Part shown: positions 6,001-56,208 of the stretch, piece after piece
Layout of the letters: every line of letters starts with the position of its first letter
Numbering within the stretch: position 1 is the first letter of the stretch
Notes under the pieces: model-generated
Databases searched by the model: none
Seen by the model: the letters and a program-made list of their open reading frames with translations, nothing else
Told to the model about the DNA's origin: nothing
Made by a program: the position numbers and the translations under genes
Source: Auanema rhodensis
Taxonomy: Eukaryota; Animalia; Nematoda
Assembly: GCA_964057225.1 (NCBI GenBank)
Contig: OZ059900.1
Span: forward strand, 3,968,001-4,032,000
Reading direction: 5' to 3'
DNA: 64,000 bases

Positions 6001-9000
6001 TGCTTTTGATCATATATATGAGCGATTTAGCCAAATTGGACTCAAAACTCGAAAAATTCAAAAATTCTTTCTATTTTCGACCTTTTTTGATCAAAATGAA
6101 TAAATATCAGTGCAAACTCATAAAAATAGACTGATTTTGTGTATTGTGTGTTTGATTCTCAAATCGTAACAAATATGATCAAAATTTACGAGTATTACAG
6201 ATTTTGTACCAAAAATCGGTGAGTATATGGTGTTAGAGGCATAAAAACGACCATACTTAGTGTAGTAATGCTATTAGAGTGAAATTCAGTGATTTAAACA
6301 TTATTAGTGTTTTCTTAATGACTTTTGTTGTCATAGACAATAAAACTATGCTTTTGATCATATATATGAGCGATTTAGCCAAATTGGACTCAAAACTCGG
6401 AAAATTCAAAAATTCTGTCTATTTTCGACCTTTTTTGATCAAAATGAATAAATATTACTGCAAACTCATAAAAATAGACTGATTTTGTATATTGTGTGTT
6501 TGATTCTCAAATCGTAACAAATTTGATCAAAATTTACGAGTATCACAGAATTTGTACCAAAAATCGGTGAGTATATGGTGTTAAAGGCAAAAAACGACCA
6601 TACTTAGTGTAGTAATGCTATTAGAGTGAAATTCAGTGATTTAAACATTATTAGTGTTTTCTTAATGACTTTTGTTGTCATAGACAATAAAACTATGCTT
6701 TTGATCATATATATGAGCGATTTAGCCAAATTGGACTCAAAACTCGGAAAATTCAAAAATTCTTTCTATTTTCGACCTTTTTTGATCAAAATGAATAAAT
6801 ATCAGTGCAAACTCATAAAAATAGACTGATTTTGTGTATTGTGTGTTTGATTCTCAAATCGTAACAAATATGATCAAAATTTACGAGTATTACAGATTTT
6901 GTACCAAAAATCGGTGAGTATATGGTGTTAGAGGCATAAAAACGACCATACTTAGTGTAGTAATGCTATTAGAGTGAAATTCAGTGATTTAAACATTATT
7001 AGTGTTTTCTTAATGACTTTTGTTGTCATAGACAATAAAACTATGCTTTTGATCATATATATGAGCGATTTAGCCAAATTGGACTCAAAACTCGGAAAAT
7101 TCAAAAATTCTGTCTATTTTCGACCTTTTTTGATCAAAATGAATAAATATTACTGCAAACTCATAAAAATAGACTGATTTTGTATATTGTGTGTTTGATT
7201 CTCAAATCGTAACAAATTTGATCAAAATTTACGAGTATCACAGAATTTGTTCCAAAAATCGGTGAGTATATGGTGTTAGAGGCATAAAAACGACCATACT
7301 TAGTGTAGTAATGCTATTAGAGTGAAATTCAGTGATTTAAACATCATTAATGTTTAATTAATGACTTTTGTTGTCATAGACAATAAAACTATGCTTTTGA
7401 TCATATATATGAGCGATTTAGCCAAATTGGACTCAAAACTCGGAAATTTCAAAAATGCTTTCTATTTTCGACCTTTTTTGATCAAAACGAATAAATATCA
7501 GTGCAGACTCATGAAAATAGACTGATTTTGTGTATTGTGTGTTTGATTCTCAAATCGTAACAAATATGATCAAAATTTACGAGTATCACAGAATTTGTAC
7601 CAAAAATCGGTGAGTATATGGTGTTAAAGGCGAAAAACGACCATACTTAGTGTAGTAATGCTATTTGAGCGAAATTCAGTGATTTAAACATTATTAGTGT
7701 TTAATTAATGACTTTTGTTGTTATAGACAATAAAACTATGCTTTTGATCATATATATGAGCGATTTATACAAATTGGACTCAAAACTCGGAAAATTCAAA
7801 AATTCTGTCTATTATCGACCTTTTTTGATCAAAATGAATAAATATTAGTGCAAACTCATAAAAATAGACTGATTTTGTGTATTGTATGTTTGATTCTCGA
7901 ATCTTAACAAATATGATCAAAATTTACGAGTATCACGGAATTTGTACCAAAAATCGGTGAGTATATGGTGTTAAAGGCATAAAAATGACCATACTTAGTG
8001 TAGGAATGCATTTTGAGCGAAATTCAGTGATTTAAACATCATTAGTGTTTATTTAATGACTTTTGTTGTTATAGACAATAAAACTATGCTTTTGATCATA
8101 TATATGAGCGATTTAGCCAAATTGGACTCAAAACTCGGAAAATTCAAAAATTCTGTCTATTTTCGACCTTTTTTGATCAAAATGAATAAATATTAGTGCA
8201 AACTCATAAAATTAGACTGATTTTGTGTATTGTGTGTTTGATTCTCAAATCGTAACAAATATGATCAAAATTTACGAGTATCACAGAATTTGTACCAAAA
8301 ATCGGTGAGTATATGGTGTTAAAGGTAAAAAACGACCATACTTAGTGTAGTAATGCTATTTGAGCGAAATTCAGTGATTTAAACATCATTAGTGTTTAAT
8401 CAGTGACTTTTGTTGTCATAGAAAATAAAACTATGCTTTTGATCATAGATATGAGCGATTTAGCCAAATTGGACTCAAAACTCGGAAAATTCAAAAATTC
8501 TTTCTATTTTCGACCTTTTTTGATCAAAATGAATAAATATCAGTGCAAACTTGTAAAAATAGACTTATTTCGTGTATTATGTGTTTGATTCTCGAATCTT
8601 AGCAAATATGATCAAAATTTACAAGTATTACAGATTTTGTACCAAAAATCGGTGAGTATATGGTGTTAGAGGCATAAAAACGACCATACTTAGTGTAGTA
8701 ATGCTATTAGAGTGAAATTCAGTGATTTAAACATTATTAGTGTTCAATTAATGACTTTTGTTGTCATAGACAATAAAACTATGCTTTTGATCATATATAT
8801 GAGCGATTTAGCCAAATTGGACTCAAAACTCGAAAAATTCAAAAATTCTTTCTATTTTCGACCTTTTTTGATCAAAATGAATAAATATCAGTGCAGACTC
8901 ATGAAAATAGACTGATATTGTGTATTGTGTGTTTGATTCTCAAATCGTAACAAATATGATCAAAATTTACGAGTATCACAGAATTTGTACCAAAAATCGG

Positions 9001-30000: not shown

Positions 30001-33000
30001 TTTAGCCAAATTGGACTCAAAACTCGGAAATTTCAAAAATTCTTTCTATTTTCGACCTTTTTTGATCAAAATGAATAAATATCAGTGCAGACTCATGAAA
30101 ATAGACTGATTTTGTGTATTGTGTGTTTGATTCTCAAATCGTAACAAATATGATCAAAATTTACGAGTATCACAGAATTTGTACCAAAAATCGGTGAGTA
30201 TATGGTGTTAAAGGCAAAAAACGACCATACTTAGTGTAGTAATGCTATTTGAGCGAAATTCAGTTATTTAAACATCATTAGTGTTTAATTAATGACTTTT
30301 GTTGTTATAGACAATAAAACTATGCTTTTGATCGTATATATGAGCGATTTATACAAATTGGACTCAAAACTCGGAAAATTCAAAAATTCTGTCTATTTTC
30401 GACCTTTTTTGATCAAAATGAATAAATATTAGTGCAAACTCATAAAAATAGACTGATTTTGTGTATTGTGTGTTTGATTCTCAAATCGTAACAAATATGA
30501 TCAAAATTTACGAGTATCACAGAATTTGTACCAAAAATCGGTGAGTATATGGTGTTAAAGGCAAAAAACGACCATACTTAGTGTAGTAATGCTATTTGAG
30601 CGAAATTCAGTGATTTAAACATCATTAGTGTTTAATCAGTGACTTTTGTTGTCATAGAAAATAAAACTATGCTTTTGATCATATATATGAGCGATTTAGC
30701 CAAATTGGACTCAAAACTCGGAAAATTCAAAAATTCTTTCTATTTTCGACCTTTTTTGATCAAAATGAATAAATATCAGTGCAAACTCGTAAAAATAGAC
30801 TGATTTTGTGTATTGTATGTTTGATTCTCGAATCTTAACAAATATGATCACATTTTACGAGTATTACAGGTTTTGTACCAAAAATCGGTGAGTATATGGT
30901 GTTAATGGCATAAAAACGACCATACTTAGTGTAGGAATGCATTTTGAGCGAAATTCAGTGATTTAAACATCATTTGTGTTTAATTAATGACTTTTGTTGT
31001 CATAGACAATGAAACTATGCTTTTGATCATATATATGAGCGATTTAGCCAAATTGGACTCAAAACTCGGAAATTTAAAAAATTCTTTCTATTTTCGACCT
31101 TTTTTGATCAAAATGAATAAATATTAGTGCAAACTCATAAAAATAGACTGATTTTGTGTATTGTATGTTTGATTCTCGAATCTTAACAAATATGATCAAA
31201 ATTTACGAGTATCACAGAATTTGTACCAAAAATCGGTGAGTATATGGTGTTAAAGGCATAAAAATGACCATACTTAGTGTAGGAATGCAATTTGAGCGAA
31301 ATTCAGTGATTTAAACATCATTAGTGTTTAAGTAATGACTTTTGTTGTTATAGACGATGAAACTATGATTTTGATCATATATATGAGCGATTTAGCCAAA
31401 TTGGACTCAAAACTCGGAAAATTCAAAAATTCTGTCTATTTTCGACCTTTTTTGATCAAAATGAATAAATATTAGTGCAAACTCATAAAAATAGACTGAT
31501 TTTGTGTATTGTGTGTTTGATTCTCAAATCGTAACAAATATGATCAAAATTTACGAGTATCACAGAATTTGTACCAAAAATCGGTGAGTATATGGTGTTA
31601 AAGGTAAAAAACGACCATACTTAGTGTAGTAATGCTATTTGAGCGAAATTCAGTGATTTAAACATCATTAGTGTTTAATCAGTGACTTTTGTTGTCATAG
31701 AAAATAAAACTATGCTTTTGATCATAGATATGAGCGATTTAGCCAAATTGGACTCAAAACTCGGAAAATTCAAAAATTCTTTCTATTTTCGACCTTTTTT
31801 GATCAAAATGAATAAATATCAGTGCAAACTTGTAAAAATAGACTTATTTCGTGTATTATGTGTTTGATTCTCGAATCTTAGCAAATATGATCAAAATTTA
31901 CAAGTATTACAGATTTTGTACCAAAAATCGGTGAGTATATGGTGTTAGAGGCATAAAAACGACCATACTTAGTGTAGTAATGCTATTAGAGTGAAATTCA
32001 GTGATTTAAACATTATTAGTGTTCAATTAATGACTTTTGTTGTCATAGACAATAAAACTATGCTTTTGATCATATATATGAGCGATTTAGCCAAATTGGA
32101 CTCAAAACTCGAAAAATTCAAAAATTCTTTCTATTTTCGACCTTTTTTGATCAAAATGAATAAATATCAGTGCAAACTCATAAAAAAAGACTGATTTTGT
32201 GTATTGTGTGTTTGATTCTCAAATCGTAACAAATTTGATCAAAATTTACGAGTATCACAGAATTTGTTCCAAAAATCGGTGAGTATATGGTGTTAGAGGC
32301 ATAAAAACGACCATACTTAGTGTAGTAATGCTATTAGAGTGAAATTCAGTGATTTAAACATTATTAGTGTATATTTGGAGACTTTCGTTATCACAGACAA
32401 TAAAACTATGCTTTTGATCATAGATATGAGCGATTTAGCCAAATTGGACTCAAAACTCGGAAAATTCAAAAATTCTTTCTATTTTCGACCTTTTTTGATC
32501 AAAATGAATAAATATCAGTGCAAACTTGTAAAAATAGACTTATTTCGTGTATTATGTGTTTGATTCTCGAATCTTAGCAAATATGATCAAAATTTACAAG
32601 TATTACAGATTTTGTACCAAAAATCGGTGAGTATATGGTGTTAGAGGCATAAAAACGACCATACTTAGTGTAGTAATGCTATTAGAGTGAAATTCAGTGA
32701 TTTAAACATTATTAGTGTTTTCTTAATGACTTTTGTTGTCATAGACAATGAAACTATGCTTTTGATCATATATATGAGCGATTTAGCCAAATTGGACTCA
32801 AAACTCGGAAAATTCAAAAATTCTTTCTATTTTCGACCTTTTTTGATCAAAATGAATAAATATTAGTGCAAACTCATAAAAATAGACTGATTTTGTGTAT
32901 TGTGTGTTTGATTCTCAAATCGTAACAAATATGATCAAAATTTAAGAGTATCACAGAATTTGTACCAAAAATCGGTGAGTATATGGTGTTAGAGGCATAA

Positions 33001-36000
33001 AAACGACCATACTTAGTGTAGTAATGCTATTTGAGCGAAATTCAGTGATTTAAACATCATTGTGTATTGTGTGTTTGATTCTCAAATCGTAACAAATATG
33101 ATCAAAATTTACGAGTATCACAGAATTTGTACCAAAAATCGGTGAGTATATGGTGTTAAAGGTAAAAAACGACCATACTTAGTGTAGTAATGCTATTTAA
33201 GCCAAATTCAGTGATTTAAACATCATTAATGTTTAATTAATGACTTTTGTTGTCATAGACAATAAAACTATGCTTTTGATCATATATATGAGCGATTTAG
33301 CCAAATTGGACTCAAAACTCGGAAATTTCAAAAATTCTTTCTATTTTCGACCTTTTTTGATCAAAATGAATAAATATTAGTGCAAACTCATAAAAATAGA
33401 CTGATTTTGTGTATTGTGTGTTTGATTCTCAAATCGTAACAAATATGATCAAAATTTACGAGTATCACAGAATTTGTACCAAAAATCGGTGAGTATATGG
33501 TGTTAAAGGTAAAAAACGACCATACTTAGTGTAGTAATGCTATTTGAGCGAAATTCAGTGATTTAAACATCATTAGTGTTTAATCAGTGACTTTTGTTGT
33601 CATAGAAAATAAAACTATGCTTTTGATCATAGATATGAGCGATTTAGCCAAATTGGACTCAAAACTCGGAAAATTCAAAAATTCTTTCTATTTTCGACCT
33701 TTTTTGATCAAAATGAATAAATATCAGTGCAAACTTGTAAAAATAGACTTATTTCGTGTATTATGTGTTTGATTCTCGAATCTTAGCAAATATGATCAAA
33801 ATTTACAAGTATTACAGATTTTGTACCAAAAATCGGTGAGTATATGGTGTTAGAGGCATAAAAACGACCATACTTAGTGTAGTAATGCTATTAGAGTGAA
33901 ATTCAGTGATTTAAACATTATTAGTGTTCAATTAATGACTTTTGTTGTCATAGACAATAAAACTATGCTTTTGATCATATATATGAGCGATTTAGCCAAA
34001 TTGGACTCAAAACTCGAAAAATTCAAAAATTCTTTCTATTTTCGACCTTTTTTGATCAAAATGAATAAATATCAGTGCAAACTCATAAAAAAAGACTGAT
34101 TTTGTGTATTGTGTGTTTGATTCTCAAATCGTAACAAATTTGATCAAAATTTACGAGTATCACAGAATTTGTTCCAAAAATCGGTGAGTATATGGTGTTA
34201 GAGGCATAAAAACGACCATACTTAGTGTAGTAATGCTATTAGAGTGAAATTCAGTGATTTAAACATTATTAGTGTATATTTGGAGACTTTCGTTATCACA
34301 GACAATAAAACTATGCTTTTGATCATAGATATGAGCGATTTAGCCAAATTGGACTCAAAACTCGGAAAATTCAAAAATTCTTTCTATTTTCGACCTTTTT
34401 TGATCAAAATGAATAAATATCAGTGCAAACTTGTAAAAATAGACTTATTTCGTGTATTATGTGTTTGATTCTCGAATCTTAGCAAATATGATCAAAATTT
34501 ACAAGTATTACAGATTTTGTACCAAAAATCGGTGAGTATATGGTGTTAGAGGCATAAAAACGACCATACTTAGTGTAGTAATGCTATTAGAGTGAAATTC
34601 AGTGATTTAAACATTATTAGTGTTCAATTAATGACTTTTGTTGTCATAGACAATAAAACTATGCTTTTGATCATATATATGAGCGATTTAGCCAAATTGG
34701 ACTCAAAACTCGGAAAATTCAAAAATTCTTTCTATTTTCGACCTTTTTTGATCAAAATGAATAAATATCAGTGCAAACTCATAAAAATAGACTGATTTTG
34801 TGTATTGTGTGTTTGATTCTCAAATCGTAACAAATATGATCAAAATTTACGAGTATTACAGATTTTGTACCAAAAATCGGTGAGTATATGGTGTTAGAGG
34901 CATAAAAACGACCATACTTAGTGTAGTAATGCTATTTGAGCGAAATTCAGTGATTTAAACATCATTAGTGTTCAATTAATGACTTTTGTTGTCATAGACA
35001 ATAAAACTATGCTTCTGATCATATATATGAGCGATTTATCCAAATTAGACTCAAAACTCGGAAATTTCAAAAATTCTTTCTATTTTCGACCTTTTTTGAT
35101 CAAAATGAATAAATATCAGTGCAAACTCATAAAAATAGACTGATTTTGTGTATTGTATGTTTGATTCTCGAATTTTAACAAATATGATCAAAATTTACGA
35201 GTATCACAGATTTTGTACCAAAAATCGGTGAATCTATGGTGTTAAAGGTATAAAAACGACCATACTTAGTGTAGTAATAATGCTATTTAAGCGAAATTCA
35301 GTGATTTAAACATCATTAATGTTTAATTAATGACTTTTGTTGTCATAGACAATAAAACTATGCTTTTGATCATATATATGAGCGATTTAGCCAAATTGGA
35401 CTCAAAACTCGGAAATTTCAAAAATTCTTTCTATTTTCGACCTTTTTTGATCAAAATGAATAAATATCAGTGCAGACTCATGAAAATAGACTGATTTTGT
35501 GTATTGTGTGTTTGATTCTCAAATCGTAACAAATATGATCAAAATTTACGAGTATCACAGAATTTGTACCAAAAATCGGTGAGTATATGGTGTTAAAGGC
35601 GAAAAACGACCATACTTAGTGTAGTAATGCTATTTGAGCGAAATTCAGTGATTTAAACATTATTAGTGTTTAATTAATGACTTTTGTTGTTATAGACAAT
35701 AAAACTATGCTTTTGATCATATATATGAGCGATTTATACAAATTGGACTCAAAACTCGGAAAATTCAAAAATTCTGTCTATTATCGACCTTTTTTGATCA
35801 AAATGAATAAATATTAGTGCAAACTCATGAAAATAGACTGATTTTGTGTATTGTATGTTTGATTCTCGAATCTTAACAAATATGATCAAAATTTACGAGT
35901 ATCACAGAATTTGTACCAAAAATCGGTGAGTATATGGTGTTAAAGGCATAAAAATGACCATACTTAGTGTAGGAATGCATTTTGAGCGAAATTCAGTGAT

Positions 36001-45000: not shown

Positions 45001-46065
45001 GTAGTAATGCTATTTGAGCGAAATTCAGTGATTTAAACATCATTAGTGTTTAAGTAATGACTTTTGTTGTTATAGACGATGAAACTATGATTTTGATCAT
45101 ATATATGAGCGATTTAGCCAAATTGGACTCAAAACTCGGAAATTTCAAAAATTCTTTCTATTTTCGACCTTTTTTGATCAAAATGAATAAATATCAGTGC
45201 AGACTCATGAAAATAGACTGATTTTGTGTATTGTGTGTTTGATTCTCAAATCGTAACAAATATGATCAAATTTTACGAGTATTACAGATTTTGTACCAAA
45301 AATCGGTGAGTATATGGTGTTAATGGCATAAAAACGACCATACTTAGTGTAGGAATGCATTTTGAGCGAAATTCAGTGATTTAAACATCATTTGTGTTTA
45401 ATTAATGACTTTTGTTGTCATAGACAATGAAACTATGCTTTTGATCATATATATGAGCGATTTAGCCAAATTGGACTCAAAACTCGGAAATTTAAAAAAT
45501 TCTTTCTATTTTCGACCTTTTTTGATCAAAATGAATAAATATCAGTGCAAACTCATAAAAATAGACTGATTTTGTGTATTGTGTGTTTGATTCTCAAATC
45601 TTAACAAATATGATCAAAATTTACGAGTATCACAGATTTTGTACCAAAAATCGGTGAGTATATGGTGTTAATGGCATAAAAACGACCATACTTAGTGTAG
45701 TAATGCTATTTGAGCGAAATTCAGTGATTTAAACATCATTAGTGTTTAAGTAATGACTTTTGTTGTTATAGACGATGAAACTATGATTTTGATCATATAT
45801 ATGAGCGATTTAGCCAAATTGGACTCAAAACTCGGAAATTTCAAAAATTCTTTCTATTTTCGACCTTTTTTGATCAAAATGAATAAATATCAGTGCAGAC
45901 TCATGAAAATAGACTGATTTTGTGTATTGTGTGTTTGATTCTCAAATCGTAACAAATATGATCAAAATTTACGAGTATCACAGAATTTGTACCAAAAATC
46001 GGTGAGTATATGGTGTTAAAGGCAAAAAACGACCATACTTAGTGTAGTAATGCTATTTGAGCGAA
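1..46065. repeat. Tandem satellite DNA array, 347/348-bp AT-rich monomer, ~133 copies, head-to-tail, continuing beyond the window start
   Basis: GTGTAGTAATGCTAT...CGACCATACTTA recurs every 347-348 bp (ORF-track echoes at 20, 368, 2106, 2454...). Monomers differ by a limited shared set of variants. The array ends at ...TTTGAGCGAA (46065). Confidence 0.99.
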
Positions 46066-46069
46066 CAAC

Positions 46070-46908
46070 TGTTACCTAACCTCCTCGTGGTGTGTCTGTA
46101 AACCACAACATCTAGGTGTTGGGGGCTAATAGGTAAGAAACTTCTCTTTTGAAGGATTTAGGAATGAGAAATACTTCTCAAACATAATCATAGAGACCAT
46201 TCCGTTTCGACCCACTAGGACTATTCGTCCGAAAATGCTCTATATAAGAGAATTCTGCAAGAAGGACCTTGGAGCGAGATTTACATCTCAAACATAATCA
46301 TAGAGACCATTCCGTCTCGACCCACTAGGACTATTCGTCCGAAAATGCTCTATATAAGAGAATTCTGTAAGAAGGACTTTGGAGCGAGATTTACATCTCA
46401 AACATAAACATAGAGACCATTCCGTCTCGACCCACAGGACTATTTGTCCGAAAATGCTCTATATAAGAGAATTCTGTAAGAAGGACCTTGGAGCGAGATT
46501 CACATCTCAAACATGACTTTAAAGACCATAACGTCTTGACAACAAGTGTGTGTGAACACACATACACAATGGGACGAACAAAAGTACCATTCTGTAGGTA
46601 AATGCTCACACACACTCGAATAACCAATAAAGTATACTTACCTTAGTGAAAAAAAATATTTATTCACGAAATACATATGCTCAACAGCAAAATAGAAATC
46701 CAACAAGGGAAACAAGTGAAGAAAAGCTCAATCGTGGGATTTCCTCTTCCTATCCTTTTTGGCCTCCTTCGCCGATTCCTGCGCCTCCAGGCGCTTCTTA
46801 CAGGCATCCAACTCAGCCTGTAGCTGAGACACTTTGCTCTGCTTGCGGAGCATTTTCTCTTCATAAGTGATCAGGAGTTGCCGCAACCCGACAACATCTA
46901 TAGCAACA
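46070..46908. mobile_element. Possible solo-LTR-like segment joining the satellite to the rDNA
   Basis: Begins TGTT (46070) and ends AACA (46908, alternatively 46896). Contains 110-bp tandem repeats with TATATAA and an AATAAA at 46626. No matching TSD or clear PBS/PPT seen. Confidence 0.4.
46176..46530 (+). repeat. 110-bp tandem repeat, ~3.2 copies
   Basis: TCTCAAACAT starts at 46176, 46286, 46396 and 46505. Each full unit carries CTCTATATAAGAG. Confidence 0.95.
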
Positions 46909-46919
46909 CCGGAAGCTAA

Positions 46920-47254
46920 ATATAAAATTTAAAGAGTCGAATGACCCAGAGACTGACATGACATCGAGGTCACCTCGAAGAAAGCCTTAAGAGGCACAAA
47001 AAGCTTTTTCCGGCGCATACCCACAACCGTTACTTTGTCGCGATCAGAATTCATATCTGGAAATCTTGAAATAAATAAGACCAAATCAAATGGTCGACAT
47101 AAAGCATATATAAAGAAATCGAGAAAATAGTATCTGCTCAGCTGAGCTTCTGAGCCAAATCGAGAAAGAGCTATCAACCAGTCAGTCCTACTGGTATTTA
47201 AATGTTACCATTTTAAAAATATGTGTAGCTCAAGCTGGATTTGAAAAAATTCAG
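46920..47254 (-). other. Putative ITS1 (~335 bp)
   Basis: Follows the 18S 3' end directly. Ends in AT-rich TTTAAATTTTATATT then TAGCTTC, which resembles the rhabditid 5.8S start. No further 5.8S follows. Confidence 0.55.
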
Positions 47255-47403
47255 CGATGATCCACCTGCAGGTTCACCTACAGGTACCTTGTTACGACTT
47301 TTGCCCGGTTCAAGCCAATGCGATCAAAATGATTTCTACGGAAGTAAAGCCGAAGCCCAACAACCATTGTCCTCATGTTTCTCGAATAAGCTCAGTTCCG
47401 GAC

Positions 47404-47438
<35 letters not shown>

Positions 47439-47871
47439 ATCAGCGCGAGTTGATGACTCACACTTACTAGGAATTCCTCGTTCATGGGAAATAATTACAA
47501 TTCCCAATCCCGGTCACGGAAGAATTTCAACGGATTACCAAAACCTTTCAGCCATGGAAAACCAGTTGCATCCTCCAGTGTAGCGCGCGTGCAGCCCCGG
47601 ACATCTAAGGGCATCACAGACCTGTTATCGCTCAATCTCGTGCGGTTAAACACCGCTTATCCCTCTAAGAAGTTATATGAACCAAAAAATTCACTAACTA
47701 TTTAGTAGACTAGAGTCTCGCTCGTTATCGGAATAAACCAGACAAATCGCTCCACCAACTAAGAACGGCCATGCACCACCAACCACCAAATCGAGAAAGA
47801 GCTATCAACCTGTCAATCCTACTGGTGTCCGGGCCGGGTGAGTTTTCCCGTGTTGAGTCAAATTAAGCCGC

Positions 47872-47905
<34 letters not shown>

Positions 47906-49002
47906 TCTTTAAGTTTCAGCTTTGCAACCATACTACCCCCAGAACCGAAAAACTTTCGTTTCCGGGAAGCTCCCCGATGAAGCACGAATACTCCTCCGGA
48001 TCGCTAGATGGCATAGTTTACGGTCAGAACTAGGGCGGTATCTAATCGCCTTCGAACCTCTGACTTTCGTTCTTGATTAAAGAAGACATTCTTGGCAATT
48101 GCTTTCGCTTTTGAGCGTCCCCCTACGGTCCACGAATTTCACCTCTCGCGCAGGGATACGAATGCCCCCGAATTGTCCCTATTAATCATTAATTCGACTC
48201 TTAAACCAATAAATAGAACCGAAGTCCTCTTTTATTATTCCATGATAGCACATACAAGCAATCGCTTGCTTTGAGCGCTTTGATTTATTCAAAGTAAACT
48301 CGCCAGCCAGTATACACACCGAAGTACATACACAAAACCGACAAAATAGACACATCTATGATTACCGGCAAGCCGTATCACAGAAAATGCCTCAGATCCA
48401 ACTACGAGCTTTTTAACTACAGCAATAACGTTTTACACTAGTGGAGCTGGAATTACCGCGGCTGCTGGCACCAGACTTGCCCTCCACTGGGTCCTTGTAG
48501 AGCTATTTAAGCTCAGCTCATTGAAATAATCAATCTAAAAAGATTGATCTTTTTATTTTTAGTTACTATCTCACTGAAGTAGTGGATAAGTTACGCGCCT
48601 GCTGCCTTCCTTGGATGTGATAGCCGTTTCTAAGGCTCCCTCTCCGGAGTCGAACCCTAATTCTCCGTTACCCGTGATAACCATGGTAAAACTCTATATT
48701 ACCATCAGGTTGATAGGGCAAACATTAATCTCGAACATCGACAGTAAAACCGTCGATTAACTGGGTTATTCAGAGTCAACAAACATAAAATTGGTTTGTA
48801 CTAATAACTGCGTTGAACTTGGGAAGAAGAACAACTATTAAGCATGTATTAGCTCCAGAATTACCACAGTTATCCATAGAAATCGAGAAAAATCATATCT
48901 GCTCTAATGAGCCGTTCGCAGTTTCTCAAAAATGATGAACTTTATACATGCATGGCTTAATCTTTTACTTGAGCATACAGCGCTGACAGAATCAATCAGA
49001 TT
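47255..49002 (-). rRNA. 18S rRNA gene, full length (~1748 nt), rhabditid-nematode type; possibly an orphan/non-functional copy
   Basis: Reverse complement has 5' CTGATTGATTCTGTCAGC, GTGCCAGCAGCCGCGGTAATTCC, GTACACACCGCCCGTC, and 3' AAGTCGTAACAAGGTACCTGTAGGTGAACCTGCAGGTGGATCATCG in correct order and spacing. Confidence 0.97.
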
Positions 49003-49310
49003 CGCAATAGAGAATCCATTATTTCTTACTAAACAATATAAATATCGAGAAGTAGAATAATTTTTTTTTTCACAATTCACCAAAAAAAATTAGGAAAGTT
49101 GAAAAATCACACAGAAACGACACAATATAGAAAATATTCACATTTTGCAATGTGAACAAGTAAAATTGCAGATAACGAAAATTATTGTAAAAATTTTCTC
49201 CTGCTACCTTACGATTGTGATATCGTTTCGGTGAATAGTGTAACAATCTTCAGATATTATTTCATAATGTTTATATTCTGATGAAACATTCCAGTAAAAA
49301 TACTATGTAA
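49003..49310 (-). promoter_or_regulatory. 5' ETS and putative Pol I promoter region (candidate start near 49204-49210)
   Basis: Unique block upstream of three 18S copies (also 51570-51878 and 57457-57762). Its distal ~110 bp is separately duplicated in the spacer, as spacer promoters are. Confidence 0.6.
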
Positions 49311-49720
49311 ATTACTTTTCCTGCAAAAATACACGAAGAAACTACTTTTCCTGCAAAAATACACGAAGAAACTACTTTTCCTGCAAAAATACACAAAGAA
49401 AAAGTTTTCATGTATAAATACACGAAAAAAAATTTTTCTTGCAAAAATACACAAAGAAAAAGTTTTCATGTATAAATACACGAAAAAAAATTTTTCCTGC
49501 AAAAATACACGAAGAAACTACTTTTCCTGCAAAAATACACGAAAAAAACTTTTTCCTGCAAAAATACACGAAAAAAAATTTTTCCTGCAAAAATACACAA
49601 AAAAAAATTTTTCCCTGCAAAAATACACAAAAAAAAATTTTTCCCTGCAAAAATTCAAGAAAAATTTTTTCCCTTGTAAAAATTCACTAAAAAATTTTTC
49701 TCCCTGCAAAAATGCGAAAA
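49311..49720. repeat. IGS ~30-bp subrepeats (~14 copies)
   Basis: CCTGCAAAAATACACGAAGAAACTACTTTT and variants in tandem. Confidence 0.95.
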
Positions 49721-49784
49721 AAAAAATTATTTAGAAATACTTCCCCGAAGACATATGGTATCAAAATTTCGTTTCTCTCTTATT

Positions 49785-50401
49785 TACTTGATTGATTCTG
49801 TCAGCGCTGTATGCTCAAGTAAAAGATTAAGCCATGCATGTATAAAGTTCATCATTTTTGAGAAACTGCGATAGGCTCACAGCTCAGAGGCCAAAAAAAT
49901 TTCCAAGTCCAAAAAAAATTTTTTTTTCAACATGTTTTCACGATACTCTCAAAACATTTTTTACACATTTTTAAAGAGTTTTAACATTGGAATTGAGAAA
50001 CAAAATTTTTTTTTTACTTGATTGATTCTGTCAGCGCTGTAGCTTTCGTCAAGGAGTAAGCCATGCCAACCGCTCACCGACCACAAAAAAATTTTTTTCA
50101 CGTACTTGATTGATTCTGTCAGCGCTGTATGCTCAAGTAAAAGATTAAGCCATGCATGTAGAAAGTTGAACTTTTTAAGCCAAACCGCCAACCGACCAAA
50201 AATTTTTTCTAGTCAAAAATTATGGAAATTTTTGTAAAATATGCAAATTTTTTTTTTCAAAACTATTTTTCAGAGTAGTCTTATTCTATTTTCTGACTCT
50301 TTTTACATATTTTACACTATATACGAAATATGTTTTGGAAAATTTCCCGATATGGCTTAATCCTTGAGGAAAGCTACAGCGCTGACAGAATCAATCAACT
50401 A
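49785..50401. repeat. IGS cluster of four 18S 5'-end copies: + strand 49785-49879, 50015-50065, 50103-50171; - strand 50352-50401
   Basis: TGATTGATTCTGTCAGCGCTGTA...TAAGCCAT is read directly. Three copies are antisense and one is sense relative to the rRNA. Confidence 0.93.
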
Positions 50402-50498
50402 AAATTTGGAATTTTTATCAAAATTTTTGATTTTTTAAATTAAAATTCTCGGGTGACCATTTATATGCGCTTTTTTTTTGAAAAATGGTTCCAATATT

Positions 50499-50640
50499 CC
50501 AATAAAGTATACTTTTTCTTACAAATAAAGTATACCTTTTCTTACAAATAAAGTATACCTTTTTTTAAATAAGGTATCAATATTGCTATCGCTATATACA
50601 ATCAATAAAACGTTATTTGAAACAAGAATAAGGTATACTT
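50499..50640 (-). terminator. Repeated AATAA(A/G)GTATAC motif just downstream of the 28S end; candidate Pol I terminator elements
   Basis: Copies at 50501, 50524, 50547 (23-bp period), a variant at 50568, and 50627. Function is inferred from position only. Confidence 0.4.
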
Positions 50641-50654
50641 TCAGGTATAAAACA

Positions 50655-50723
50655 AAACATCCAATCAAAGGATAGTCTCAACAGATCGCAGTATATAAAG
50701 ACTGCTCTACTGGATACAACACC
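50655..50723 (-). pseudogene. 28S rRNA 3'-terminal fragment (~69 nt)
   Basis: Reverse complement GGTGTTGTATCCAGTAGAGCAGTCTTTATATACTGCGATCTGTTGAGACTATCCTTTGATTGG resembles the terminal helices of nematode LSU rRNA and is followed by IGS. Confidence 0.85.
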
Positions 50724-51569
50724 TACGAATGTCCCCGAATCGTCCCTATTAATGATTAATTCGACTCTTAAACCAATAAATAGAACCGAAGTCCTCTTTT
50801 ATTATTCCATGATAGCACATACAAGCAATCACTTGCTTTGAGCGCTTCGATTTATTCAAAGTAAACTCGCCAGCCAGTATACACACCGAAGTACATACAC
50901 AAAACCAACAAAATAGACACATCTATGATTACCGGCAAGCCTTATCACAGAAAATGCCTCAGATCCAACTACGAGCTTTTTAACTACAGCAATAACGTTT
51001 TACACTAGTGGAGCTGGAATTACCGCGGCTGCTGGCACCAGACTTGCCCTCCACTGGGTCCTTGTAGAGCTATTTAAGCTCAGCTCAGTGAAATAATCAA
51101 TCTAAAAAGATTGATCTTTTTATTTTTAGTTACTATCTCACTGAAGTAGTGGATAAGTTACGCGCCTGCTGCCTTCCTTGGATGTGGTAGCCGTTTCTAA
51201 GGCTCCCTCTCCGGAGTCGAACCCTAATTCTCCGTTACCCGTGATCACCATGGTAATACTCTATATTACCATCAGGTTGATAGGGCAAACATTAATCTCG
51301 AAAAAAGACAGTAAAACCGTCGATTAACTGGGTTATTCAGAGTCAACAAACATTAATTTGGTTTGTACTAATAACTGCCTTGAACTTGGGAAGAAGAACA
51401 ACTATTAAGCATGTATTAGCTCCAGAATTACCACAGTTATCCATAGAAATCGAGAAAAATCATATCTGCTCTAATGAGCCGTTCGCAGTTTCTCAAAAAT
51501 AATGAACTTTATACATACATGGCTTAATCTTTTACTTGAGCATACAGCGCTGACAGAATCAATCAGATT
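50724..51569 (-). pseudogene. Truncated 18S (nt 1-846) fused to the 28S 3' end
   Basis: Colinear with 48157-49002, with scattered substitutions. Junction TACAACACC|TACGAATG. Confidence 0.93.
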
Positions 51570-51878
51570 CGCAATAGAGAATCCATTATTTCTTACTAAA
51601 CAATATAAATATCGAGAAGTAGAATAATTTTTTTTTCCCAATTCACCAAAAAAAATTAAGAAAGTTGAAAAATCACACAGAAACGACACATTATAGAAAA
51701 TATTCACATTTTTCAATGTGAACAAGTAAAATTGCAGATAACGAAAATTATTGTAAAAATTTTCTCCTGCTACCTTACGATTGTGATATCGTTTCGGTGA
51801 ATAGTGTAACAATCTTCAGATATTATTTCATAATGTTTATATTCCGATGAAACATTCCAGTAAAAATTTTATGTAAAA
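51570..51878 (-). promoter_or_regulatory. 5' ETS / putative Pol I promoter, copy 2
   Basis: Near-identical to 49003-49310. Confidence 0.6.
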
Positions 51879-52311
51879 TACTTTTCCTGCAAAAATACAC
51901 CTACAAACTACTTTTCCTGCAAAAATACACGAAAAAAAATTTTTCCTGCAAAAATACACAAAGAAAAAGTTTTCATGTATAAATACACGAAAAAAAATTT
52001 TTCCTGCAAAAATACACAAAGAAAAAGTTTTCATGTATAAATACACGAAAAAAAATTTTTCATGTATAAATACACGAAGAAACTACTTTTCCTGCAAAAA
52101 TACACAAAGAAAAAGTTTTCATGTATAAATACACAAAGAAAAAGTTTTCATGTATAAATACACGAAAAAAAATTTTTCCTGCAAAAATACACGAAGAAAC
52201 TACTTTTCCCGCAAAAATACACGAAGAAACTACTTTTCCTGCAAAAATACACGAAAAAAATTTTTCCTGCAAAAATACACGAAAAAAAAAATTTTTCCTG
52301 CAAAAATACAC
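51879..52311. repeat. IGS 30-bp subrepeats, interrupted by the LTR
   Basis: Same unit as at 49311. The last copy ...CAAAAATACAC abuts TG at 52312. Confidence 0.93.
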
Positions 52312-52651
52312 TGCGATATGAATTGTCTAAAGTTCTAAGTTTCTTGAGTTGCTAAGTCCAAAAAGGTGGGTTTTCAAGAACGAATCTTTACTATACGAGA
52401 GATAATGATTAAAAAAACAAAGTATTAGAACTATATCGAATTAGCACCAAAACTAACAACGATATTAACACGAACTAAAATAATATCAAGAGTGTCAACG
52501 TACCAACTAAATTAACTAATTAATAACTAACTAGAGAACTCACTCCCTCCATTCTACCTAACTATATATATATTAGACGATAGTTGATCTTAGGAGATCA
52601 AACCTAACTCTACATGTATTGTAGTATGAGCGGTACGATAGATATGTGACA
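52312..52651 (-). repeat. Putative 3' LTR (340 bp)
   Basis: Minus strand reads TGTCAC...ATCGCA, and the CA end coincides exactly with the subrepeat junction. TATA-like run near 52563 and AGTAAA at 52387-52392. There is no second LTR to confirm the boundary. Confidence 0.65.
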
Positions 52652-55600
52652 TCTCGGGGGGTGAAAAAAATGCTCAAGCCCCATTTGAGCAGGCTTGACT
52701 ACGTGAGAGAAAGATATCAGTAGCTACTATCTCTGATAAGCCGTACAGTGTCCAAAAGAATCTAGACTAACCTGTTGACCTATGGGATAATACTCAAGTG
52801 CAGAACTTCACCTTGATGTGATAGCTACTTACTCTTGACAAAAACCTCTGTGCTCTTCAACCAAGAACCATATCACTCATACGAAAACATAAGAGACCAT
52901 ACAACAAAACTAATTCAAAAAAAATAATAATAAGAAAAGAAAAAAAATCTTCTTCTTCTACGACTTCGGTCGACCTCTATTCCTACGTCCCTGAGCTAAC
53001 TTCTGTGGAACGTTTACAAACTGTGTGTTTGAGGGAACCACAAGATCTGATTGTACCCAAGTAGGATTTTTGTTCAGATCTAAAAGAACTGAAGTTTTTG
53101 CTATATCCTTTACCGTAAATGGTCCACGAAACGGGAGTCCTAACTTCTTTTGAGCCCCTTGTTCGTTCAATATCTTAACGAACACTTCTTCTCCTTGCCT
53201 AAACCGATGGGAGGATGACACCTTATGTTTCGCGTCGTAAGCCGACTTCATAAGCTCAGCTTGTTTCTGTGAACGTTCAAGAGCAACTTTACGTGAACGA
53301 CCTAAAACTTCTTTCAGCTCTAATAAATAAGCATCCATATCTGTCAGCTGGAATTGTGACTCAGAGTAAAACTCTGAAAATAATCGTGGAGCTGTTCCAT
53401 ATAACAACTCATAAGGTGAGAATCCTGTTCTCTCATGTACAGCTGTATTATATCCAAATAGAACAAGTGGGAGCCTAGTGTCCCAATCTGAGCGAGCACA
53501 ATCGCTTTTTCTTAACATGCCTACAATTGTTTGGTGAGTTCTTTCCGCCAGCCCATTTTCTCTGGGATTATAAGCCTTTGACGGACACCATGTAATTTGT
53601 AGCGAATCGCAAAGAGCTTTGAAATATTTATTGTCAAACTCTAACCCGTTGTACGAAATTATGCGTGTGGGTAACCGTGCCCCATATCCTATCCACCCGG
53701 TTAAAAATGACTTGACGCATAACTCTGCTGACTTGTTGGGCAGTGGGTAAATTTCTGCCCATTTTGAAAAATAATCAACCACCACTAGACCATACCTATT
53801 ACCCTTTCTAGACATGCCCAACTCTACCATGTCCATTCCCACAGTCTCGAACGGTTTTGTAACTAAAATGGGATTTAACGGTGGAACATTAGTGGATTTG
53901 TAATTGTTTAAGTAACATGATAGACACTTTTTATGCCACTTAATTATATCTGGACCCATTCCCAACCAAAAAAAATTCTCTTTTAAACGCTTTAGCAGCT
54001 TATCTGGCCCTAGGTGCCCTGCCCATACTCCTCCATGCGTATCAGCTATTAGCTTTTCTCGCAACGAGACAGGTACTACCAACAGTTCCTTACCATCCGG
54101 CGTGAGATGGTACAATTTCTGGTTTCTCATAACGAATTCTTTCAACTGAAACCGCTTACCTCCTAAACGAACAACCGTTTCTCCGGATTCATCCAGTCTA
54201 TCGAGAAGTGTTGAAAATTCCGGATCTATTTTCAAGGCTGATATCCACTCATCCTGTTTTCCCTGTTCCAGCTCGATCCTACCGATCACTACTTCTTCAG
54301 TGAACTTGAACTCTTTTTCAGTGGTCTGCCCACCACAATCAACTGGTCCTCTGCTGAGACCGTCAGCTACCCTGTTCGCCGGCCCTTTAATGTATTCTAT
54401 CTGTAAATCATAAGTTCTCAACTTGATTGCCCATCGTAGAACTCGATTGGATGTTTGGCTATTTGCAAACAGACTGAGCAAAGGTAAGTGATCTGTTCTC
54501 ACAATTATCCTAACACCATAAATCAAACCATGAAATCTTTCACAAGCATGTACGATTGCTAGTGCCTCCAGATCTGTAATAGCATACTTCACTTCGTGCT
54601 TTGTCAATCCCCTTGACGTAAAAGCGATCGGATGATATAAATCATCTTGCTGTTTTTGGGTGAGAACGGCGCCCGTTCCTTTCAAACTTGCATCTGTGTA
54701 AAGGATCATTGGTCTTGTACCGTCCCTAGCTGCATCTATATCCGGTTGATGAAGTACAGGCGTGGAACTCATCTTCTGTTTCAGCTTGTTGAAAGACTGT
54801 AAGCACTCCTCATCGAAGTTCCATTCCTTCTTTGTAGAAGTGAGTGCATAGAGAGGTTTCGCAATAACCGCGAAATGTAGTATAAACCTACGATGATACG
54901 AGATCATTCCTAGAAATGTGCGGAGATCCGCTAAACACTGGGGTACTGGGTATTCCACGATGGCCCGTACCTTTTCAGGATCAGTCCGAAGACCTCCAGC
55001 TGATACAATATGACCTAAGAACCGTAACTCAGCTTGAAATAACTTACACTTACTTGGCTTCAACGTGACTCTGAAGCTCTTAAACAGTTGGAAGATCTCA
55101 TCCAAGACTTCCAAGTGTCGTGCTGTTGATGTTGTACTGATTATGACATCATCCACATACGTGTGGACCTCTTTACCCCATAACTTACTGTGACTCAATA
55201 TATAATCCATAGAACGTTGAAAAACAGAAGGGCTGTTACTGAGACCAAAAGGAAGTCGCTTGAACTGGTACAACCCTTTGTGCGTTACGAACGCTGACTT
55301 TTCCTTAGCTGCTTCCTCTAGCGGGATTTGGAAAAATCCTTGAAAGCAATCTATCGAACTGAAAACTGTATACCCTGCCAGTCTTTGTAGCGTTAGTTCA
55401 GCATTTGGTAGAGGATACTTATCCTTTTTCAGCACCTTATTCAGAGCTCTATAATCAACGCAGACTCGCAAAGATCCATCCTGCTTCCTCACTAATACCA
55501 ATGGCGAAGACCAACTAGAAGACGATCTTTCCGTTATTCCTGACGACTCCATCTCGTCCAAAATAGCACCAAGCTCCCTCTGTACTGCGAGTGGCACTGG

Positions 55601-56208
55601 TCGCACCCTTTGTGCAATAGGCGCAGCATCGCCCGTATCGATCGGAGCTGGGGGTACAAGCATAGTCTGCAAATTCTTTTCGTTTGTCGAGAACAGGGTT
55701 TCATGCTTCCTCAGAAGAGACATGACGTCTTTCTTGCGCACTATCTTGCTGTCAACCGCATCAACTATCTTTTGAAGCTGAGCCGACGTGTCTGTTAATT
55801 CATCTTCGTCTGTATATTCCACACGCTGACAGACAAGGTCTAAAGACGGTGTTTCCTGTAATAATGATCCCACCACTTGGGATTTTTTAAATACTAACGG
55901 ATGCAATCCTGAGTTATGCACCGGTATTTCTAACAACTCGCCAACAGGCGAACCTACCGTACTCGGTATTGACGGTTCTTCACTAAAAAACGAAACCGGC
56001 TGCTTGGTTCCTGACCCATCAATTGTTACAATCTTGGAGCAACCTGGTGGGATTACACATCTCGCCTGAATCTTTGCAAGATCACTCTCAAGACACAACT
56101 GAATACCTAAAGCAGCAAACGAATTAGAGCCCAGTATTACCTGTGGCGTGTTCATGAACGCTACTGACACCTTAGCGGTTCGTTTACTTCGAATAAGGTG
56201 GATATCCA
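52312..56208 (-). mobile_element. 5'-truncated Ty3/Gypsy LTR retrotransposon (3' LTR + 3' UTR + pol; no gag or 5' LTR)
   Basis: Pol domain order is RT-RNaseH-IN. A TG...CA-bounded segment lies at the 3' end. The 5' side is joined directly to 18S sequence at 56209. Confidence 0.92.

Follow-up and report, generated by a model that had tools for sequence, protein, structure and literature searches.

Beside a large block of satellite DNA in the nematode Auanema rhodense lies a short ribosomal DNA unit in which the 5' half of the 18S gene is joined directly to the very end of the 28S gene. Such a unit raises the question of whether it still serves its host, as a transcribed minigene or as a structural element, or whether it is a repeat that has outlived the function of its parent. 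The window analysed here is the whole stretch of 64,000 nucleotides containing the unit (assembly GCA_964057225.1, contig OZ059900.1, positions 3,968,001 to 4,032,000 of the forward strand, deposited as Auanema rhodensis), and all positions given below refer to it.

The mini-rDNA unit and its junction

Self-alignment shows that 48157-49732 corresponds to 50724-52296 at an offset of 2567 bp, and Rfam places the starts of 18S at 49002 and 51569. The offset and the two starts thus give a unit of 2567 bp at 49003-51569, counted from the nucleotide that follows one 18S start up to where the next 18S begins, and an 18S part of exactly nt 1-846; these are the limits proposed in an earlier note that was made from the sequence alone. 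The rRNA sense is the minus strand for all rDNA-derived pieces across 46066-64000. Read in this direction, the unit (mini1) begins with the truncated and decaying 18S nt 1-846 (50724-51569), which matches the Rfam SSU model at positions 1-658 with 481 bits and whose 5' part was matched at 50944-51569, also on the minus strand, in a further Rfam search. It is followed by the last ~72 nt of 28S (50652-50723) and then, at a distance of 85-150 nt from the end of 28S, by a 23-bp repeat present in 2.9 copies (50501-50567, minus strand, found by TRF), which was called terminator-like in the earlier note and has a putative role. Next comes a spacer cassette (49780-50404, without assigned strand, from self-BLAST) in which short stretches of the 18S 5' end recur in both sense and antisense orientation, and then 14 copies of a 29-bp spacer subrepeat (49289-49732, minus strand, TRF) situated upstream of an ETS. 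Upstream of the mini unit an ETS is likewise found together with 29-bp subrepeats (51570-52311, minus strand; TRF, self-BLAST and alignment). The homology to rDNA is given by Rfam for the 18S part and by alignment for the 28S tail, while the ETS and the spacer are common to the mini unit and the unit with a full 18S. In contigs from two DNA runs (X1 and X9) and one RNA-like run (X12) there is a spacer variant that lacks the 128 nt at 50519-50646 and has one 23-bp repeat directly after the 28S end; intact units may have this form.

The only rRNA detected by Rfam in the window is that of the small subunit, as a full 18S at 47255-49002 and partial matches at 50684-51566, 56508-57456 and 63486-64000. 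Neither 5.8S nor LSU was matched within 46000-64000, even at E<=0.01, and the window is thus without any complete rRNA gene unit. This agrees with the earlier reading that the unit lacks the 3' half of 18S, 5.8S and nearly all of 28S, and means that the mini units have lost the capacity to encode rRNAs; the complete 18S-5.8S-28S transcription unit that characterizes a functional Pol I repeat is not found by Rfam anywhere in the window. Both flanks of the transcription unit are nevertheless retained in every unit, and this could be due to selection rather than chance. A scan for promoters and terminators of bacterial type gave hits at chance level, the model being bacterial and irrelevant to Pol I.

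In the sense orientation the junction reads ...CATTCGTA|GGTGTTGTATCCAGTAGAGCAG..., and alignment shows it both in 50650-50830 and in 63456-63636. The intact 18S continues past the same point as ...CATTCGTA|TCCCTGCGCGAGAGGTGAAATTCG, and on the side of the 28S parent the loose ends of read-derived contigs run across the break as ...CTGGTCAA|GGTGTT.... The overlap between the two parents at 50723/50724 is a single A, and this overlap of 1 nt indicates end joining rather than homology-driven recombination. It had been suggested that the motif GGATAC lies next to the break. The motif is indeed present in both parents, spanning the break in the 18S parent (as GTATCC in the sense orientation, GGATAC on the plus strand) and lying 6 nt inside the 28S piece, but the parents are not joined there, since their overlap consists of one A only. 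A retro-copy origin by template jumping of a reverse transcriptase is unlikely, as the unit keeps presumably untranscribed spacer on both sides.

When the 101-nt tail was used alone, Rfam returned chance matches only, and the identity of the 28S piece was instead established with rDNA from metagenomes, where a 15-nt motif of the tail retrieved many rDNA contigs. In three of these the LSU ends defined by Rfam are at 6570 (L030), 7898 (L093) and 3680 (L008), and unit positions 846-919 align to L030 6495-6571, L093 7827-7901 and L008 3609-3682 with 90-92% identity. The alignments to LSU 3' ends identify the tail as the last ~72 nt of 28S, ending near 50652; the earlier assignment to the 28S terminus is therefore right, while the length of ~69 nt given for it is slightly too short. 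The exact 30-nt junction sequence was absent from the metagenome contigs searched. L030, which comes from a related nematode-like organism with an 18S that is 85% identical, carries in its spacer two 30-nt stretches copied from the 18S 5' end (7432-7461 and 7616-7645), and the 28S tail occurs there a second time, downstream of the gene (6707-6747). The spacer copies show that the cassette with 18S 5' ends is not peculiar to the A. rhodense genome.

The probable array edge and its neighbour

Two units within the window carry the 18S::28S junction. The second of them (mini2) contains 18S nt ~376-846 at 63530-64000 (minus strand; Rfam, self-BLAST and alignment), where it runs off the window, and its 28S tail is found at 63458-63529. 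The alignments bear out the earlier observation that the same junction recurs at 63529/63530 in a copy with different SNPs. Read in the rRNA sense from 64000 downwards, mini2 is followed by spacer, an expanded block of 29-bp subrepeats, a third truncated 18S with an ETS/18S fragment, a retrotransposon, mini1, the unit with a full 18S and a stub, and finally the satellite. Such an order of the pieces in 46066-64000 is to be expected where a tandem array ends and unequal exchange homogenizes its copies poorly. The surroundings of the unit comprise 46 kb of satellite, a retrotransposon fragment, a second illegitimate junction and scrambled pieces of rDNA, a context that speaks for satellite DNA rather than for a working system.

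The expanded 29-bp block (57766-62540, minus strand, TRF) is about ten times larger than the corresponding blocks elsewhere, 4.8 kb vs ~440 bp, and self-BLAST finds three extra copies of the 85-nt sequence 49204-49288 in it, at 59752, 60940 and 61835. This 85-nt sequence sits just upstream of the ETS, and its repetition recalls duplications of spacer promoters. The third truncated 18S, which has ETS in front of it, contains nt 1-862 (56597-57456, minus strand; alignment and Rfam). It has a junction different from that of the mini units, nt 862 being joined to ETS position -42 with an overlap of 1 nt, and the fragment entered in this way extends from ETS -42 to 18S nt 347 (56209-56597, minus strand) and is 99.5% identical to 48656-49044. 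Compared to mini2, the third copy is 99.8% identical over 471 nt and has 16 more nt of 18S. The two independent illegitimate breaks in 18S, at nt 862 and nt 846, are accordingly just 16 nt apart in a gene of 1748 nt, and each has an overlap of 1 nt. This spacing could reflect a break hot spot or a relation by lineage.

Between the third copy and mini1 lies a fragment of a Ty3-like LTR retrotransposon that lacks its 5' part (52312-56209, minus strand; ORF, Pfam and sequence reading). Its pol reading frame is open for 1083 amino acids (52958-56209) and contains the Pfam domains RVT_1, RNase H, an integrase zinc-binding domain and rve. At 52312 the 3' end of the element (...CA) meets the 29-bp repeats, while the other side is joined to 18S nt 347. 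A pair of LTRs was looked for around the fragment and not found.

On the other side of mini1 the ETS of 286 nt (49003-49288, minus strand) leads into the full-length 18S of the terminal unit (47255-49002, minus strand), an orphan copy that matches Rfam model positions 1-1831 with 1539.8 bits and is followed by neither 5.8S nor 28S according to Rfam. The rDNA-derived block ends in 46066-47254 (minus strand; sequence reading and TRF, without any Rfam match), where a short ITS1-like stub gives way to non-rDNA sequence containing a 110-bp repeat in three copies. Self-BLAST finds a 41-nt snippet of 18S at 47155-47195. The 110-bp repeat and a lysine-rich ORF of 52 amino acids, followed by AATAAA, are found between the stub and the satellite at 46172-46514 and 46728-46886. 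That the terminal unit keeps an undeleted 18S argues for an origin of the array in place, from ordinary rDNA.

The first 46065 nt of the window consist of a tandem satellite with a period of 348 bp (1-46065, without assigned strand), for which TRF reports 95 + 37 copies at 94-95% identity; its GC content is 28%. The published FISH probe for XT-1 matches the window 120 times at <=2 mismatches, once per monomer, where 0 matches are expected; the XT-2 probe has no match in the window, and no telomere repeats are found in the 64 kb. XT-1 is an "X-Terminal eliminated" repeat of A. rhodense, the repeat-rich X ends of which show coverage of the germline type (bioRxiv 10.64898/2026.08.27.747507). The phase of the satellite is broken at 32971-33138, where neighbouring probe sites lie 167 bp apart rather than ~348 bp and where TRF splits the array (33060-33065). 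Judging from this one probe match, the window very probably belongs to the germline-restricted block at the X end of A. rhodense, with the mini-rDNA array adjoining the satellite. Since XT-1 is lost from somatic cells and adjoins the array, its neighbourhood suggests that the mini-rDNA array is probably germline-restricted as well. Arrays of 5S, tRNA and U2 genes are among the tandem repeats eliminated in A. rhodense, and no array derived from 18S or 28S is given there (bioRxiv 10.64898/2026.08.27.747507); nor was a description of such an array in nematodes found in the literature searched.

Decay of the rRNA parts and the search for transcripts

The two mini units differ by 2.1% in the 18S part, by 1.4% in the 28S tail and by 1.1-1.2% in the spacer. 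The earlier proposal that one deletion derivative was propagated and has since diverged is supported. At columns without variation among four related rDNAs, the deviations number 8 of 491 in mini1, 6 of 491 in the third copy and 3 of 273 in mini2, vs 1 of 491 in the full copy. The same tendency is seen in the Rfam score over 18S nt 1-655, which is 495.6 bits for the full copy vs 481 for both mini1 and the third copy. Within 50724-50990 mini1 differs at five places from the contigs of all four sequencing runs used, the RNA-like one included, and these differences are private to mini1, as the full copy matches the runs at all five. With changes at invariant sites and an 18S that is no better conserved than the spacer, the rRNA parts behave as unconstrained, and judging from their substitutions the rRNA pieces are apparently not under selection. 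The full-length 18S has a T at nt 383 (48620), where all other copies in the window and the four related rDNAs have a C within the conserved GGCTACCACATCC motif. Given this change in a conserved motif, even the full 18S is unlikely to be a working gene.

The presence of the junction in reads was evaluated with Logan contigs aligned to 49740-50990, a stretch outside the conserved 18S core. In the DNA run X1 two contigs with a summed depth of 1236 are found at 50732, one of which is a unitig of 72 nt (50695-50766) with 29 and 43 nt on either side of the break. In X4, a run from a different study, one contig with a depth of 448 crosses the junction, both of its ends being 29 nt or more away from position 50732. 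The junction is thus present in unitigs from DNA runs of two studies. Eleven contigs in X1 go from the 28S tail into sequence absent from the window, and this off-window sequence beyond 50724 on the 28S side, in X1 as well as in X4, is read as intact 28S. The ratio of junction depth to spacer depth is ~0.14 in X1 and ~0.19 in X4, values that are suggestive only, as contig depth is not copy number. In X9, which has a different organism code, and in X12, the only contigs at the junction are those that begin at 50724 and proceed into intact 18S, with loose ends of the form ...CGCAGGGA. No contig crossing the junction was found in X9, where contigs show presence and not absence.

According to the earlier note, the unit would be a defective-interfering-like repeat that might produce a chimeric Pol I RNA of ~1.1 kb. 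Read as active Pol I minigenes, the units would sequester Pol I or processome factors through this RNA or their promoters, or would be a source of antisense ribosomal siRNAs. In laboratory Pol I minigenes a promoter and a 5' part are linked to the 3' end of 28S with a terminator, and the mini unit has the same layout, but is known from DNA alone. C. elegans has an antisense ribosomal siRNA (risiRNA) pathway for which an aberrant chimeric rRNA is a proposed kind of trigger. The retention of the ETS, the subrepeats, the 28S terminus and the repeats downstream of it speaks for this possibility, as do the spacer's antisense copies of 18S 5' sequence and the spacer contigs with a depth of ~4.7 in X12. 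However, the contigs of X12, a small run guessed to be RNA, contain none that crosses the junction, in spite of summed 18S depths of up to ~100,000. The spacer contigs of X12 carry the common spacer letters, and their source could be intact units, mini units or DNA contained in the run. In addition, the 18S part is decaying at conserved sites, and the edge units are disrupted with no sign of repair. Active minigenes of this kind are hence considered unlikely. What stands of the defective-interfering idea is a propagated deletion derivative that has kept both flanks, while the chimeric RNA has no counterpart among the contigs of the one RNA-like run. As contigs show presence and not absence, and as a single small run guessed to be RNA was covered, this negative is weak, and it leaves the idea of interference, a chimeric RNA or an siRNA source unsupported rather than refuted.

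The array might instead have a structural role in the germline without any RNA product, for instance in meiotic pairing of the X end, in segregation, in tethering to the nucleolus, or in marking the block for elimination. In Drosophila the spacer repeats of rDNA act as pairing sites between X and Y. The array adjoins XT-1 on the X end, and it has been speculated that repeat blocks enable the unusual meiotic program and drive of A. rhodense (bioRxiv 10.64898/2026.08.27.747507). However, a neutral satellite accounts for the same facts, and the assignment to a chromosome comes from one probe match; a structural role is regarded as quite improbable. Combining the two possibilities, the array could consist of germline-restricted, Pol I-competent minigenes with activity limited to the germline or to embryos before the 12-cell stage, their aberrant 18S::28S transcripts or their factor binding acting in X behaviour, nucleolar dosage or elimination marking. 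Expression confined to the germline or the early embryo could escape X12, for which tissue and library are of unstated kind, and there is a slim chance that the array is of this type. That the junction or the order of the pieces was created by misjoined repeats in the assembly is very improbable, for although the region is highly repetitive and was analysed with contigs rather than long reads, the junction is found twice in the window with different SNPs and also in unitigs of two studies. The support from contigs covers the 18S::28S junction, while the other joints (46065/46066, 52311/52312, 56209 and 56597) are known from the assembly alone.

A probable path from ribosomal genes to satellite DNA

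The explanation judged to be probable is that the feature is a satellite derived from rDNA, seen where its array ends. A single rDNA unit beside XT-1 would have lost the 3' half of 18S, ITS1, 5.8S, ITS2 and nearly all of 28S in one end-joining event with a 1-nt overlap. The shortened unit, which retained spacer, subrepeats and ETS, would then have been multiplied into an array, presumably by unequal exchange. At the array margin homogenization would be weak, so that older and damaged forms may persist there. The forms at the edge would accordingly be the terminal unit with a full 18S, the mini unit, a unit hit by a Ty3 element and by a second deletion, the ten-fold expansion and, beyond it, the first mini unit of regular form. 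Such an array is most likely transcriptionally silent.

A similar transition from rDNA to satellite DNA has been described in tomato, where truncated units occur together with a Ty3 element and with subrepeats expanded 10-17-fold (PMC2679016). Diverged, truncated rDNA units were multiplied by recombination in tomato (Jo et al. 2009, PMC2679016), as they presumably were here, and in the transitional tomato BAC clones, too, a Ty3-type LTR retrotransposon is located within the 18S region (PMC2679016). The subrepeat block of tomato has grown from 448 bp to 4.8-7.9 kb (PMC2679016), compared to from ~440 bp to 4.8 kb here, and the heterochromatic setting is another shared feature. The tomato units, however, retain parts of all the rRNA genes and end as a pure satellite of the 53-bp subrepeat (PMC2679016), while the A. 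rhodense unit has one clean deletion that joins 18S nt 846 to the 28S tail, a length of ~2.6-3 kb, and both flanks in place.

Repeats derived from rDNA and confined to eliminated germline DNA are known from lamprey, where Germ1 consists of truncated 28S and a part derived from R2, and from hagfish, where EEEb3 derives from 5S (PMC9734144). These are vertebrate repeats, whereas the present one is found in a nematode, and Germ1 arose from an R2 insertion (PMC9734144) and not from an internal deletion joining 18S to 28S. Elimination is established for Germ1 and EEEb3 (PMC9734144), while in A. rhodense it is suggested by the XT-1 neighbour only. Human rDNA pseudogenes and orphan fragments resemble the array in that degraded pieces occur outside working units and that terminal units are truncated (PMC5381670). 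Most of the human pseudogenes are, however, dispersed and highly degraded (PMC5381670), in contrast to what would here be a homogenized tandem array of one deletion form. The distinguishing feature of the present case is the unit itself, a natural "minigene" that one clean 18S::28S deletion has left with intact flanks, in a nematode.

The locus is a clean natural example of a working multigene family turning into satellite DNA. The whole 18S as the ancestral state, the founding deletion, later damage and the expansion of subrepeats can be seen next to one another at the array edge. Should the array truly lie inside the discarded block at the X end, it would join lamprey Germ1 as dead rDNA that is kept only in the germline, and it would offer a convenient way of testing if Pol I promoters are used in eliminated DNA.
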